Shown in pieces: positions 10,289 through 32,866 of a DNA stretch of 64,000 bases (positions within the stretch are counted from its first letter, which is position 1; each line of letters starts with the position of its first letter). The position numbers and the translations under genes are program-made. The DNA lies in the sequence record NC_041878.1; one strand, written 5' to 3'. The notes beneath the pieces are model-generated. The model was not told the DNA's origin and did not search any database. It saw nothing but the letters and a program-made list of their open reading frames with translations.

Positions 10289-10317
10289 TGAAACGATAGA
10301 AAAAAATGTGGTATAAT
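10289..10317 (+). promoter_or_regulatory. TGAAAC-N17-TATAAT promoter (stable-RNA class)
   Basis: TGAAAC 10289-94, spacer ending TGG, TATAAT 10312-17, upstream of tRNA-Met. Confidence 0.7.
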
Positions 10318-24699: not shown

Positions 24700-25134
24700 A
24701 TGACACGTATTAATTTAGTTCCAGTACAAGAATTAGCCGATCAACATTTGATGGCCGAATATCGTGAATTGCCACGTGTGTTCGGTGCAGTTCAAAAGCA
24801 TATTGATGCTGGTAAGAAAATTAAAGATTTTAAAATCAACCAAACTTATATTCTTGGTACTGGTCATGTAACATTCTTCTATGATAAATTGCTATTCTTA
24901 TCTTTACGACATGAACAAATAGTACTTGAATGTTTAAAACGTGGAATAAAAATTAGTAATATCGATAAGTATGATGTTTCTAGTTTTCCTTCTGTGTGGT
25001 GTAATGATTATATTCCAACAGAAGCAGAAATAAGTATTTCACGTACTCGTTTGATTGAAAAGTTAAAAATTAAACCTTCTTGGTACAGGTTCAGTACTGA
25101 TTCAGTTCCTAAGTATTTTGAAGAAATGCTATAA
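24700..25134 (+). CDS. denV: Pyrimidine-dimer DNA glycosylase / endonuclease V
   Basis: MTRINL...[17 protein letters not shown]...[13 protein letters not shown]...KRG matches T4 DenV. Confidence 0.95.
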
Positions 25135-25853: not shown

Positions 25854-26044
25854 CTTCATTTCGTCGATTTACTATAGCCTTTTGGGGCGGTCATGTTATC
25901 GGTGCAGTTGGGTTAATCGTTGGTATGATTCTGATGGTGCAACATCAAGATTTTACATACTTAATTGGTTCAGCGATATGTGGATTGATTGTTGCATTCT
26001 CATACGTACAACTTATGTTTAAATTCGTAAAGGTGAAATCATGA
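25850..26044 (+). CDS. Small two-TM membrane protein
   Basis: AGGAG RBS, two hydrophobic segments. Confidence 0.65.
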   Translation: MTSFRRFTIAFWGGHVIGAVGLIVGMILMVQHQDFTYLIGSAICGLIVAFSYVQLMFKFVKVKS

Positions 26045-26274
26045 TTTATCAATATGCTATCGTCGATGAAGAATCAGAAGAAGTAATTGGTAAGTATGTT
26101 AATACTGTTAAACCTTTTAAAATGCGTAACGTGATTTATACCCTGAAATCGCCCGATGGTGAAGTACTGTCACAAGGTAAAGCATTTCTTTCCAGGGCTG
26201 AAAAGTTTTGGGATCAGGTGAAAGATCCTCTGTACAGTGCGAATCAGAAAAACAATCTGATTATCGGTGGTTAA
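26041..26274 (+). CDS. Hypothetical protein
   Basis: 77 aa, AGGTG RBS. Confidence 0.65.
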   Translation: MIYQYAIVDEESEEVIGKYVNTVKPFKMRNVIYTLKSPDGEVLSQGKAFLSRAEKFWDQVKDPLYSANQKNNLIIGG

Positions 26275-26279
26275 TTAAA

Positions 26280-26308
26280 TGAAACCACGGATTTTTTTAT
26301 GGTATAAT
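26280..26308 (+). promoter_or_regulatory. TGAAAC-N17-TATAAT promoter (stable-RNA class)
   Basis: Same -35, TGG and -10 geometry as the two tRNA promoters. Confidence 0.7.
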
Positions 26309-26313
26309 CATAT

Positions 26314-26830
26314 AGACAATCCTGCTTGATAGGGAGAGAAATCTTCCTAATGATTGAATCCCTACTTCGATGAAAATGTAATTGGAGAGTTGAGAAGTTC
26401 AGGCAGTTCGGAGAGCAAAAGAAACCCGTTAGGAGATGGCATAGTTTGTACCACCCACGGCAATGCGGCTCTATAAAGAAGTACATCTAATCGTTACCAG
26501 TACTTCCTCGATAGACATATAAGTGCAACCTTACCAAAAACGATAAGGGAGAATATGCACCAATTTTGTACAATATAGATCCGTCCAAAATTTGTGAATC
26601 ATATTCAAGTACTTTGTTTGATTGTATAGACAAGTATTAAGTGAGCTAAGACCTCGACCGTTGTTAGAACTGAAATAGGAAGAAACAGGACAACCCGCTT
26701 CCGTGCTGAAAAGTAATTTTCAATACAATTGCCGACGACTATCATCGTCAGTTTTCATCCTCCTGCGGGGGGATGAAATTGCCTCTACAAATCTCGTCAG
26801 TAATAAATGTGTTGAACAGTACAACGATTG
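26314..26830 (+). ncRNA. Putative approx. 500-nt structured ncRNA
   Basis: No ORF; hairpins GTGCA/TGCAC enclosing CCTTA/TAAGG, TGAAAA/TTTTCA, GACGA/TCGTC, TTTCATCC-TCC-TGC-GGG-GGATGAAA. Confidence 0.55.
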
Positions 26831-26948
26831 AATTTTAAATATGATTTTCTTGCAGCGAAGCGTAAGAAAATCCTTGACTTGCTTCAGCAAGGCGAGTACA
26901 CTACTCGAATTGAAGCATAAACAAATCATAAAATATGAGGTACATCTG

Positions 26949-27752
26949 ATGGGTACAATCCTGATGAAAGCAGAACTGCAAGATGTTTCGGTTGATAATA
27001 TTAAGCAGTACTGCTTCGATCATTTAAATGGTCGTGAAGTTGAATTCTTTGCAACTCGCCCACAATTGCGTGAAGCTTTGGTCAAAGCTGACATTAGTCC
27101 ATCTTTGCAGCATAGCTTGAATAGTTATAAAACTCTCACACGTGATGAGTGTATTTCTATTTTGGAAAATAGCTCGCAAATCTGGAATTCGATTGTAACT
27201 GATTACCAGTACGATCTCGATCTTCTGTATAAAGTTGCAAATAAAATCAATTTGTCATACGTGGATTGTCAGGAAAGTCTTGACGTTGCATTTGTTAAAC
27301 AATACGCAGATTCAATGGACATTTCTGATTTTGTTTCTCGCCGTATTAATAACGGCACGATTGAACAATTCTTTGAAGTTCCACAAGTAATGAACCGTTA
27401 TATGCGTACTGCGGTTCGTTGGAGCATTAGCCGTCCTGAACTGGTAAGTTTTATTGCTCGTCATAAAACTGATATTCAGCGTACAGAAATTGAAAAATTT
27501 GTTGATGAACTGTATAATAAGCCGGTTAGTGAAGAAACATTGACTGCTGCATATTCAGATCATCGCCGTGCTTCTCACAGTGTTGATACTGTAGTTAGCT
27601 ACTTCAAACGTAATCGTACTAAAGTTGAATACGCTACGTGGGATGATTATGTACTGGATTGTCAACGTACTGGTGATGATGGCCTGGCTGATTGCTGGTT
27701 CCGTGATTTCTTCCGTCCAGAAATTTGTGAGTACGCTGGCATCCAAATTTAA
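26949..27752 (+). CDS. Helical-repeat protein, family with C-terminal TW..W motif
   Basis: GAGGT RBS, ATG 26949; C-terminal ATWDDY...CWF. Confidence 0.75.
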   Translation: MGTILMKAELQDVSVDNIKQYCFDHLNGREVEFFATRPQLREALVKADISPSLQHSLNSYKTLTRDECISILENSSQIWNSIVTDYQYDLDLLYKVANKINLSYVDCQESLDVAFVKQYADSMDISDFVSRRINNGTIEQFFEVPQVMNRYMRTAVRWSISRPELVSFIARHKTDIQRTEIEKFVDELYNKPVSEETLTAAYSDHRRASHSVDTVVSYFKRNRTKVEYATWDDYVLDCQRTGDDGLADCWFRDFFRPEICEYAGIQI

Positions 27753-31182: not shown

Positions 31183-32369
31183 TGACTTATAAAATATGGC
31201 AACCCAGGATAACCTCAATTGAAGTTCTTGGTAGCATAACTACAACAAATCATACAACAACTGATACAACACCAATACCTGTTATTAAAAGGAATAATAT
31301 GATCGCGATTACCGATCCAGTTCGTTTGCAAGTAGAAGATATTCTACGTGCAAGTTTGAAATACGCTTCAAATCTACGTGTTAAAGATGTAGTACGTTAT
31401 AAACTTGCCGAGAAGTTTATGAATACTCACAGCGATACTGAGTATTATGTGAATGAAAATGAAAAAGAAGGTAAGAGTACTTTCAAACAAGTAGTTAGTA
31501 CATTTTGTGAGAAACACAATTTGGGTACTATTAGTATGGGATACCAAGAACTTGTATTCAATGAAGAACAAGTAATTGGTTCAATTTCATTTGTATTCTA
31601 TACTGATAAAACCTTCGGGTTTGATTACATTATGGATGAAACTCTTGTTGATGATTTCAAACTTTGCATCAAGAATCGTGAGAACTGTAATAACACTCCT
31701 ATTCTTAATCGTTTGAGTCTGGACAACATGGGTCGTATGAACGAGAATAACATTCTGTTCAATCCACCTAAGATCAATATGCCATCAGAGATCATGTATC
31801 CGTGGTTTGATTTTACACCTGAAGAACTTGCAAAAAACTTCATGGATAGTACTGCGAATGTTCTAGTACTATACGGTGATCCAGGTACAGGTAAGACTAC
31901 GTTTATTAAACGTATGTTGCAGGGTGTTGGTTTTGAAGAGAACCGTTCTATTACGGTCGTTGATACACCAGCAGTAATGCAATCACCAGAACTGGTTAAT
32001 AATATCTATACGTCTAAACACAAAGATATTTTCATCTTTGAAGATGTTGACCGTCACCTTTATTCACGTGAAGAAGGTAATGATATTATGGCTGGTCTAT
32101 TGAACGCAGCAGAAGGTTTAGCATCACCTGATGTTAAGATCATTATCAGTACTAACATTAAGAATCTTAATGATATTGATAGTGCATTGATTCGTCCAGG
32201 TCGTTGTTTCAAAACTCTTGAGTTCTTGAAACTACAAAAAGAAGAACAGATTAATGTTCGTAACTTCTTAGGTCTTGATGTAGAAGTATGTACTTCTGCA
32301 ACACAATCTCTTGCAGAAGTAATGAATGAACGTGCAACTACCGGAATGGTTGGTTCAGGTTTTCTGTAA
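31182..32369 (+). CDS. AAA+ ATPase
   Basis: Walker A GDPGTGKT, Walker B FIFEDVD, STN sensor 1, DSALIRPGR SRH motif. Confidence 0.9.
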   Translation: MTYKIWQPRITSIEVLGSITTTNHTTTDTTPIPVIKRNNMIAITDPVRLQVEDILRASLKYASNLRVKDVVRYKLAEKFMNTHSDTEYYVNENEKEGKSTFKQVVSTFCEKHNLGTISMGYQELVFNEEQVIGSISFVFYTDKTFGFDYIMDETLVDDFKLCIKNRENCNNTPILNRLSLDNMGRMNENNILFNPPKINMPSEIMYPWFDFTPEELAKNFMDSTANVLVLYGDPGTGKTTFIKRMLQGVGFEENRSITVVDTPAVMQSPELVNNIYTSKHKDIFIFEDVDRHLYSREEGNDIMAGLLNAAEGLASPDVKIIISTNIKNLNDIDSALIRPGRCFKTLEFLKLQKEEQINVRNFLGLDVEVCTSATQSLAEVMNERATTGMVGSGFL

Positions 32370-32423
32370 TTAATTTGGGATGCTTCGGCATCCCTTTTTT
32401 CGTTTGACATTTGGGAGTATTTC

Positions 32424-32612
32424 ATGTTATCATATGATGTAGTACTGAAAGGATTAAAAGATGGTGAAGACGTATATGAAACTATCGAACTCAAAATTGA
32501 AGCCGAAACCGAAGTTGAAGTAGATGCATTGATCGCAGATGCTATCTATCAGGTTCGTTTAGATAATATGTATTATAAAATGAAATATGTATCTAAGGTA
32601 AAATGTGAATGA
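32424..32612 (+). CDS. Small acidic protein
   Basis: 62 aa, GGGAG RBS. Confidence 0.6.
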   Translation: MLSYDVVLKGLKDGEDVYETIELKIEAETEVEVDALIADAIYQVRLDNMYYKMKYVSKVKCE

Positions 32613-32866
32613 CCCGAAGTGTACAATCCTATATCAATCGTTATAAAGCATCCTGGAAAACTCGTCGGGATGTAAACAGTACTATCAAACAATTGCAAGA
32701 TAAATTGAACTGTCTGATGAAAACACGCTCGAAAGATTTAAGGAACTCTAAGAATCTGGATGAGAAAGTAGCAGTACGCAATCGTTATGATAACGATATT
32801 AAATTTTATGATTACCTTCTGTACATTATTAAGTTAGACTATTATGAGATTGTGAGTGAGTTATGA
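32609..32866 (+). CDS. Hypothetical protein
   Basis: 85 aa, coupled. Confidence 0.6.
   Translation: MTRSVQSYINRYKASWKTRRDVNSTIKQLQDKLNCLMKTRSKDLRNSKNLDEKVAVRNRYDNDIKFYDYLLYIIKLDYYEIVSEL

Follow-up and report, generated by a model that had tools for sequence, protein, structure and literature searches.

The DNA analysed here is a window of 64,000 nucleotides (nt) from record NC_041878.1, the genome of the Pectobacterium jumbo phage vB_PcaM_CBB (hereafter CBB), a Mimasvirus; its sequence is identical to that of KU574722.1, and record position equals window position plus 310000. Between genes CBB_523 (end 26274) and CBB_524 (start 26949) lies an unannotated gap of 674 bp (26275-26948) which, judging from comparison with related sequences, is almost certainly the gene for a large structured RNA of an undescribed family. 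The RNA probably consists, as far as conservation delimits it, of a core of about 490 nt, or about 585 nt when the hairpins on its 3' side are included, and CBB carries it in five diverged copies. An earlier note on this stretch had proposed a structured RNA with a gene of its own, about 500 nt long, under a TGAAAC-type promoter, and the covariation and absence of coding signal described below support that proposal. The best overall explanation, mechanism included, is in our view a free-standing gene for a large folded non-coding RNA (ncRNA) that would act in trans, to which we give a probability of roughly 0.5. The accessible portions of the literature on the phages CBB, GAP32, phAPEC6, UE-S1, fEgEco12 and PA5oct and on structured phage RNAs contain no description of this RNA, the supplements of survey PMC10690425 lying outside that scope.

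Folded as a single sequence, the window copy is only mildly better than its shuffles (-122 kcal/mol, z = -2.34), so that the structural case rests on comparison with relatives. We scanned all column pairs of an alignment of 43 phage copies for stacked covarying pairs and for mutual information, and assembled a model of about 18 helices, three of the long-range ones being pseudoknots. Over the well-aligned part of this model (85 pairs), 93.6% of the cells are canonical and 58 pairs have changed on both sides; column shuffles, a control that ignores phylogeny, averaged 45.5 such pairs and never exceeded 51, with 76% canonical cells, and sliding the partners by 1-3 columns left 37-44% canonical. 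Six bacterial copies kept out of model building are 93% canonical (448 of 481 cells) and bring new compensatory types. On 21 copies RNAalifold returned 57 pairs, and 26 of these show compensation on both sides. Changes from C-G to U-G are frequent and fit the + strand only, and these strand-specific G-U pairs, together with the compensatory changes, show selection on the fold of the + strand. Many loops are near-invariant across copies. Helices P1, P8 and P14 align poorly, and their statistics understate or misstate the support for them.

The same comparison speaks against a coding function. That the stretch is free of open reading frames (ORFs), as first noticed, is borne out in the sense that nothing is annotated between CBB_523 and CBB_524 and that the gap holds short ORFs only, none of them conserved among copies. 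Stop-free stretches vary in strand, frame and place from copy to copy, codon periodicity is absent (135, 129 and 133 variable columns by position modulo 3), and the window ORFs matched no family in PHROG or Pfam. We therefore rejected the reading as a coding or decayed gene; as to a gene remnant with homology in a shifted frame, no protein homology was found in any frame.

The core occupies 26315-26806 on the + strand, as do all elements that follow, and extends from the start region to a conserved CAAATCTCGTCAG tail. Its first element is P1 (26317-26356), a two-part hairpin with CAATC/GATTG outside and TAGGGA/TTCCTA inside; its alignment figures are weak (60-75% canonical) because this variable hairpin aligns poorly, and compensatory variants such as AAACT/AGTTT with CCTTG/CAAGG are seen. 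The 5' side of the internal loop of P1 takes part in pseudoknot PK-A (26323-26405), in which TGCTTGA (26323-26329) pairs with TCAGGCA (26399-26405) in the loop of P3. PK-A is 90% canonical with six of its seven pairs changed on both sides, and one pair, 26325/26403, is canonical in every copy while using five pair types. P2 (26366-26386) carries the conserved loop GAAAAUGUA and is 88% canonical with five pairs changed on both sides (100% canonical in the bacterial copies), and P3 (26394-26409; 26394-26396/26407-26409) is 100% canonical, its middle pair alternating between A-U, U-A and C-G. Next comes P4 (AGAGC/GCTCT) around the irregular hairpin P5 (26412-26472), with the near-invariant loop CAUAGUUUGUA and the strand CACGGCAAUGCGGC in P5; P4, P5a and P5b are all 100% canonical, and four of the five pairs of P4 have changed on both sides. 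P6 (GAAGTAC/GTACTTC, 26478-26506), which closes a variable loop, is 91% canonical with all seven pairs changed on both sides.

The P7 region (26523-26606) has an inner stem, CCTTA/TAAGG (26529-26533/26544-26548), and two mutually exclusive outer helices: GTGCA/TGCAC (26523-26527/26556-26560) is 50% canonical, GAATATG/CATATTC (26551-26557/26600-26606) 87% with four pairs changed on both sides. P8 (26562-26592), a hairpin with the conserved 17-nt loop UACAAUAUAGAUCCGUC, is movable: the paralog group near 94 kb has it in the P13 loop, and a copy from an Escherichia coli island has it at both sites; peripheral docking elements of large folded RNAs shift their insertion sites as P8 does. P9 (AGTACTT/AAGTATT, 26608-26638) is 92% canonical with all seven pairs changed on both sides, and 98% canonical in the bacterial copies. 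Its loop forms PK-C (26621-26729), where ATTGTAT (26621-26627) pairs with ATACAAT (26723-26729); this pseudoknot is 91% canonical with five pairs changed on both sides in phages, and 100% canonical in the bacterial copies, which add the variants TTTATGT/ACATAAA and TTCATAC/GTATGAA. P10 (TGAG/CTCG, 26642-26656, loop CUAAGAC) follows with 96% canonical cells and three of four pairs changed on both sides. The long-range helix P11 (TGAAA/TTTCA, 26671-26722) encloses P12 (GGAAG/CTTCC, 26678-26682/26698-26702) and P13 (26705-26707/26712-26714), and the loop of P12 is engaged in PK-B (GTTGT 26660-26664 with ACAAC 26690-26694). P11, P12 and PK-B are each 100% canonical, with four of five, four of five and three pairs, respectively, changed on both sides.

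Two direct repeats, ATCATCGTCAG (26741-26751) and ATCTCGTCAG (26791-26800), flank the 11-bp hairpin P15 (26753-26778), whose run of six Gs is conserved in nearly all copies (five in a few). The G-rich core of P15 is 96% canonical, with pairing kept through C-G to U-G changes. Columns 26742 and 26792 of the repeats co-vary (T/T in 31 copies, C/C in 12), and the repeats agree in their last base, which is either G or A; such parallel change looks as if one partner reads both. Beyond the CGTCAG tail a 3' extension (26807-26897) contains GTGTTGAAC, with GTGTTRAAC as its common form, followed by a long hairpin, H16 (26843-26851/26864-26872), with an apical loop related to GAACGNAGUGA, and a second hairpin, H17 (26873-26876/26893-26896 and 26878-26882/26887-26891). 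H16 and H17 recur with differing stem sequences in most phage and bacterial copies, as read from listings and single-sequence folds rather than scored by alignment. H17 contains a TTGAC that resembles a -35 box with an UP element, and may be RNA structure, promoter or both. In three of the five paralog groups a terminator-like hairpin followed by U7 lies within the conserved RNA, immediately 5' of its last conserved hairpin (for instance at L029:20090-20120 and L031:3800-3830, given as locus and position, and in many other copies); the window copy has none.

All stems named in the earlier note are present in the sequence, and the alignment sorts them. CAATC/GATTG around TAGGGA/TTCCTA is upheld as P1 by its compensatory variants, and GGAAG/CTTCC as P12. 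CCTTA/TAAGG is conserved, with no pair changed on both sides, and the 11-bp hairpin is likewise conserved, as P15, with a G-rich core that varies by C-G to U-G change and never on both sides. GTGCA/TGCAC is doubtful, given its canonical fraction and its competition with the better-supported helix 26551-26557/26600-26606. Two stems fail: TGAAAA/TTTTCA, whose TTTCA strand pairs instead with TGAAA at 26671-26675, and GACGA/TCGTC, which is 73% canonical with no pair changed on both sides. As to extent, the end proposed at 26830 falls short, the conserved element continuing to about 26897.

How widespread is this RNA? A blastn search of phage records with the RNA as query matched 250 places in 62 jumbo-phage records, three to five per genome, and a search with the conserved core alone at E <= 1 returned the same 62 records. 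Among the matches listed, all the phages are jumbo phages with genomes of 319-386 kb. The carriers include the Mimasvirus phages CBB and GAP32, the Eneladusvirus phages Serratia BF, Yersinia fHe-Yen9 and Erwinia pEa_SNUABM, the Asteriusvirus phages 121Q, PBECO4, phAPEC6 and relatives, and further Salmonella 7t3/Munch, Klebsiella fENko-Kae01 and Xanthomonas and Erwinia jumbo phages. RaK2 and K64-1 gave weak partial matches only, and only when a bacterial copy was the query. Two pattern scans of IMG/VR found contigs of this jumbo-phage group and no others. A 50-nt segment of the 21,925-bp Klebsiella phage phiKp_21 (LC768490.1, 10104-10153) matches the P12/PK-B part of a bacterial copy at 86% and could mark another carrier or be due to chance.

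In CBB itself, an nhmmer profile run over the whole genome (378,379 bp, of which 22,456 bp are a terminal repeat) located five diverged copies, which share the + strand and lie in separate gaps of 660-790 bp without annotation: record positions 32318-32834, 94260-94787, 174424-174964, 258145-258679 and 336316-336805. The last is the window copy (26316-26805 of the window; 410.7 bits, E = 5e-124), which has all the family hallmarks, namely TGRRAC-N17-TGnTATAAT, the P4-P5 core with CACGGCAAUGCGGC, the three pseudoknots, the P15 G-run and the CGTCAR tail; a second copy inside the window was searched for and not found. Around the 355.9-kb unique genome the copies are separated by 62, 80, 84, 78 and 52 kb. 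Ten full-length genomes or contigs were compared, of which four have all five copies located, with the layout of CBB repeated in the three others; three or four copies were located in the remaining six, which have gaps of 130-163 kb where the search patterns may have missed a copy. Otherwise, adjacent copies lie 55-102 kb apart and on one strand. Where a related genome is complete, four or five copies were located in it. In a tree of 43 distinct copies, sequences group mostly by genome position across genera, from which it follows that the duplications predate the split of Mimasvirus and Eneladusvirus and that each paralog has been kept since. The exception is the copy at about 32 kb, which in CBB falls near the window paralog and in GAP32 elsewhere.

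The promoter is conserved upstream of all RNA copies examined. At the window copy it spans 26280-26308 on the + strand and consists, as the earlier note had read it (TGAAAC-N17-TATAAT), of TGAAAC at 26280-26285, a 14-nt spacer and the extended -10 element TGGTATAAT at 26300-26308; transcription probably starts near 26314-26316. The pattern TGRRAC-N17-TGnTATAAT was matched before 41 of the 43 phage copies, our script having chosen another site in the remaining two, and before three bacterial copies. Reading of upstream sequence gave TGAAA[CT]-N~15-TGTCCTATACT for five further bacterial copies (ATATCC in L069); with TGAAA[CT], the -10 variants of bacterial copies are TGTCCTATACT or TGCTATACT, and the E. 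coli island copy has TGGGAT with TGATATAAT. Both the TGAAAC box and the extended -10 are compatible, by their sequence, with host sigma-70 polymerase.

The window contains exactly three TGAAAC-N16-18-TATAAT sites, at 1731 before a transfer RNA gene (tRNA-Pro), at 10289 before tRNA-Met and at 26280, against a mean of 0.13 in shuffled windows, none of 100 of which reached three. The claim that this promoter form occurs otherwise only before tRNAs therefore holds within the window. It does not hold genome-wide: CBB has 34 TGRRAC-N13-15-TGnTATAAT sites, every one of them on the + strand, and downstream of these lie many protein genes, among them those for DNA polymerase, single-stranded DNA-binding protein, gyrase B and the late sigma factor, as well as several tRNAs and the five RNAs. 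The earlier note had supposed a co-regulation of the RNA with tRNAs; since the class also precedes many protein genes, the RNA belongs to that class as a whole and not to a tRNA regulon. The promoter class is already known, having been reported as a divergent RpoD-like promoter of CBB and GAP32 (Buttimer et al. 2017, PMC5259590); the kind of RNA is newly described here. ARAGORN places 10 tRNAs within the first 10.6 kb of the window, and tandem tRNA-Pro(UGG) genes (1781-1853 and 1858-1933, 4 nt between them) stand shortly 3' of one of the TGAAAC promoters.

The family also has members in bacterial chromosomes. A full-length, intact homolog with its promoter is present in two of 5,426 complete E. 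coli genomes, LR-29-1 (NZ_AP027515.1) and NZ_CM130020.1, of which we examined the former. There the RNA (about 3478975-3479570, or L067:5838-6430; E = 5e-101 against the profile) occupies part of a gap of 1.4 kb, free of annotation, within a roughly 10.7-kb island in the ffs-ybaA interval. The island encodes a tyrosine integrase broken by IS3, several hypothetical proteins, a resolvase and a candidate defence system, the PADLOC candidate PDC-M45 with DuOB, DUF488 and mSLOG-DUF4326 proteins. Only the RNA part of the island matches phages, most closely (80.6%) the 174-kb paralog of Serratia BF and Erwinia phages. A strict 32-nt pattern found no match in bacterial genomes, and a second pattern from another part of the RNA, run on bacterial genomes sampled at one per species, gave seven more loci (L069-L075), all full-length copies: one from Buttiauxella, two from Enterobacteriaceae, two from Serratia, one from Enterobacter chinensis and one from a small binned contig. 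The plasmid collection contained no match to the RNA.

At all bacterial loci examined the RNA stands at the edge of an integrated element, in differing contexts. In the first, read in L069, a tyrosine integrase is followed by the RNA, a divergent CI-like repressor and a Cro-like gene; integrase and RNA were also seen in L071, and the flanks of L075 are common with the L069 type by DNA similarity. In the second a large serine recombinase precedes the RNA, and in the third the RNA adjoins two ParB-like genes and a serine recombinase. Elements of different context types have in common just 600-970 bp or so around the RNA.

What could such an RNA do? We favour an RNA particle acting in trans, a mechanism to which, taken by itself, we give slightly less than an even chance. 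The RNA would accumulate as a stable molecule in the middle phase of infection, together with genes of the same promoter class such as tRNAs and replication genes, and would act in trans in the form of an RNA particle. Its partner may be a protein of phage or host; alternatively, the RNA may form assemblies alone or with its four paralogs, in the manner of the phage-borne RNA families ROOL and GOLLD. The five paralogs may even co-assemble into one hetero-oligomeric particle. The target would probably be something shared across Enterobacterales, either a process of the host or a conflict between phage and host, since unrelated mobile elements of the same hosts carry the module in self-contained form. 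We prefer this mechanism because the complexity of the fold and its invariant loops recall catalytic or scaffold RNAs, because the 174-kb copy stands alone with a terminator at its end, and because unrelated mobile elements carry the module by itself, beside an integrase, where cargo genes of prophages usually lie.

Several points weigh against it. No transcript of any family member turned up, the literature consulted giving no transcriptome for these phages. The hairpin and U-run found in three of the five paralog groups would, if an efficient terminator, remove P15 and the tail. A protein shared as partner by phages and the E. coli island was looked for and not found. Trans action also leaves unexplained the even spacing, common orientation and separate long-term retention of five copies, as well as the parallel change of the two repeats, which is reminiscent of protein-binding sites.

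These last features would be accounted for if each copy marked a replication origin, five for the 356-kb genome and one for a small integrative element, with a promoter-driven, structured transcript that stays hybridised to the template near the G-rich P15 and is processed to a primer. We consider this, the main rival, unlikely on balance. A smallest gap as large as that between the five CBB copies would arise by chance with a probability of about (1 - 5 x 0.146)^4 = 0.005; spacing and single strand are maintained in other genomes, and all copies are oriented with the bulk of transcription even where neighbouring genes lie on the other strand. Retention of each paralog at its syntenic site is what a cis-acting element would show; replication genes are among those driven by the promoter class, and the phage encodes RNase H proteins. 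The two parallel-changing repeats resemble iterons, the G6 run and the conserved sequence 3' of the core suit a hybrid-forming region, and bacterial islands have a single copy in a non-coding region beside the integrase. However, synteny is inherited, so the spacing amounts to effectively one observation, and GC skew gives no clear signature (four loci change by +0.04 to +0.10, about 1-2.6 standard deviations where the random standard deviation is 0.04, and the fifth falls). Three pseudoknots and many invariant loops exceed the needs of known primer RNAs, and in the E. coli island the RNA gene is still intact while the integrase is broken by IS3. A fuller version, in which the five RNAs are cis-acting initiators of five evenly spaced, co-oriented origins, heavily pseudoknotted primers after the manner of ColE1 RNA II, and the islands captured one copy, either as satellites that an infecting jumbo phage would replicate or as a defence that diverts its replication machinery, strikes us as somewhat less probable again.

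Two known systems resemble such a proposed origin. RNA II of ColE1 is promoter-driven, about 555 nt long and dependent on RNase H, with a G-rich segment and a fold needed for function. The phage RNA is likewise promoter-driven, similar in length and equipped with a G-rich segment; if it worked in a comparable way, a single copy would let a mobile element replicate without an initiator protein of its own. It differs from RNA II in having no sequence relation to it, a far more knotted fold and far more conserved loops, and no antisense partner was identified, no systematic search having been made; a promoter scan lists weak promoter-like sites on the - strand. The second system is phage T4, of which CBB is a distant relative. 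T4 has several origins per genome, among them oriF and oriG, which work through an R-loop at a middle-mode promoter. To our knowledge, T4 origin transcripts are not large conserved structured RNAs, and no DNA unwinding element was identified at the RNA loci. The likeness lies in the number of origins, since both phages would have several per genome, and in the promoter: the RNA is placed behind a phage class with a non-canonical -35 that also precedes replication genes (PMC5259590).

Could the RNA instead be the long untranslated 5' leader of the downstream gene, here CBB_524, and control it as a riboswitch or attenuator does? No terminator is evident between the window copy and CBB_524, and in the group near 94 kb the next gene has its ribosome-binding site and start codon directly against the last hairpin; the mutually exclusive helices of the P7 region and the internal hairpin with U-run of some copies would also suit such a leader. 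On the other hand, the genes flanking the five copies, including the downstream ones, have different annotations and form no shared family, a comparison made at the level of annotation. The 174-kb copy runs opposite to the genes on either side and has a bidirectional terminator behind it, leaving it no downstream gene on its strand, and the next gene in bacterial elements is a divergent CI-like repressor. Since the downstream genes differ and some copies lack one on their strand, we regard a leader role as very improbable.

That the element acts only as DNA, as a repeat, a small non-autonomous mobile element or a gene remnant whose RNA has no role, we discount almost entirely: it is multi-copy, occurs in unrelated genomic contexts and is in part annotated as repeat_region in one record, but it shows compensatory changes with strand-specific G-U pairs, a conserved promoter, no terminal inverted repeats, no protein homology in any frame, and paralogs fixed at syntenic sites without polymorphic insertion sites seen among close relatives.

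An equally small chance remains for a divergent member of a known RNA family, an idea suggested by a ROOL-like size, a phage setting rich in tRNA genes and a pseudoknot-rich fold. Rfam 15 was searched with the whole window at the gathering threshold, with 26000-27100 at E <= 10 and with 12 other loci at E <= 5; no family matched at the gathering threshold, and the permissive thresholds gave scattered chance matches only, none of which recurred. The covariance models of ROOL (RF03087) and GOLLD (RF01998) were thus unmatched, so that the earlier label 'ROOL-like' holds for size and setting and fails for membership. Hallmarks of transfer-messenger RNA (tmRNA) and RNase P RNA had not been noticed from the letters, and neither was found now: ARAGORN reported no tmRNA in the window (its 10 tRNAs only), Rfam matched neither, and the GAGGAAAGUCC-type motif of RNase P RNA was not seen in the sequence. 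The group I intron model (RF00028) was unmatched as well, and the element is intergenic, has its own promoter and interrupts no gene.

The closest parallels to the favoured particle are nevertheless ROOL, of about 580 nt, and GOLLD, of about 800 nt, which are likewise large, ornate and pseudoknotted ncRNAs whose biochemical role is unknown. Both are often found on phages or prophages, and often near tRNA genes. The phage RNA differs from them in lacking a covariance-model match and in having five diverged, position-specific paralogs per genome in phages of Gram-negative enteric hosts. Cryo-electron microscopy has shown ROOL and GOLLD to form RNA-only multimers, according to a preprint (bioRxiv 10.1101/2024.12.08.627333). 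Another parallel is ncRNA002 of PA5oct, a related jumbo phage, a 451-nt RNA that RNA sequencing found to make up about 5% of phage reads (PMC7318152). It is similar in length to the RNA and lies in a gene-free gap; we rejected it as a homolog, the family profile giving no similarity with all nhmmer filters off, and regard it as an analogy only.

The automatic ORF list moves the start of CBB_524 upstream to an ATG at 26841 (26841-27752), so that the gene would overlap the conserved hairpins at the 3' side of the RNA; a better fit is the start given in the annotation, at 26949, which has its own ribosome-binding site. In other phage records the RNA region is either blank or filled with short hypothetical ORFs, apart from the record that labels part of it a repeat. 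Such hypothetical proteins, some of them on the opposite strand, include GAP32_503A (L003:1024-1137) and 7t3_0445 to 0447 (L005:595-1088), which are probably spurious calls. An 8-kb query around the window locus gave, in distant relatives, denV and the RNA as the best or sole matches; denV (CBB_519, endonuclease V, 24700-25134) has 66-77% DNA identity to T4-like phages.

Large, intricately folded RNAs are rare, and RNase P, group I and II introns, tmRNA, OLE, ROOL and GOLLD have each opened up biochemistry or remain puzzles. The class described here is tractable: its covariation is strong, its five separately conserved paralogs are suited to genetics, and it has members in cultured phages of E. 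coli, Serratia, Erwinia, Yersinia, Salmonella and Pectobacterium as well as natural versions in chromosomal islands, one of them adjoining a candidate defence system. For annotation, it gives content to regions that present records leave blank or cover with spurious small ORFs. If the five copies were origins, they would provide the first account of how replication starts in Rak2-like jumbo phages; if the RNA acts in trans, as we favour, it would be a new RNA player in the conflict between phage and host.

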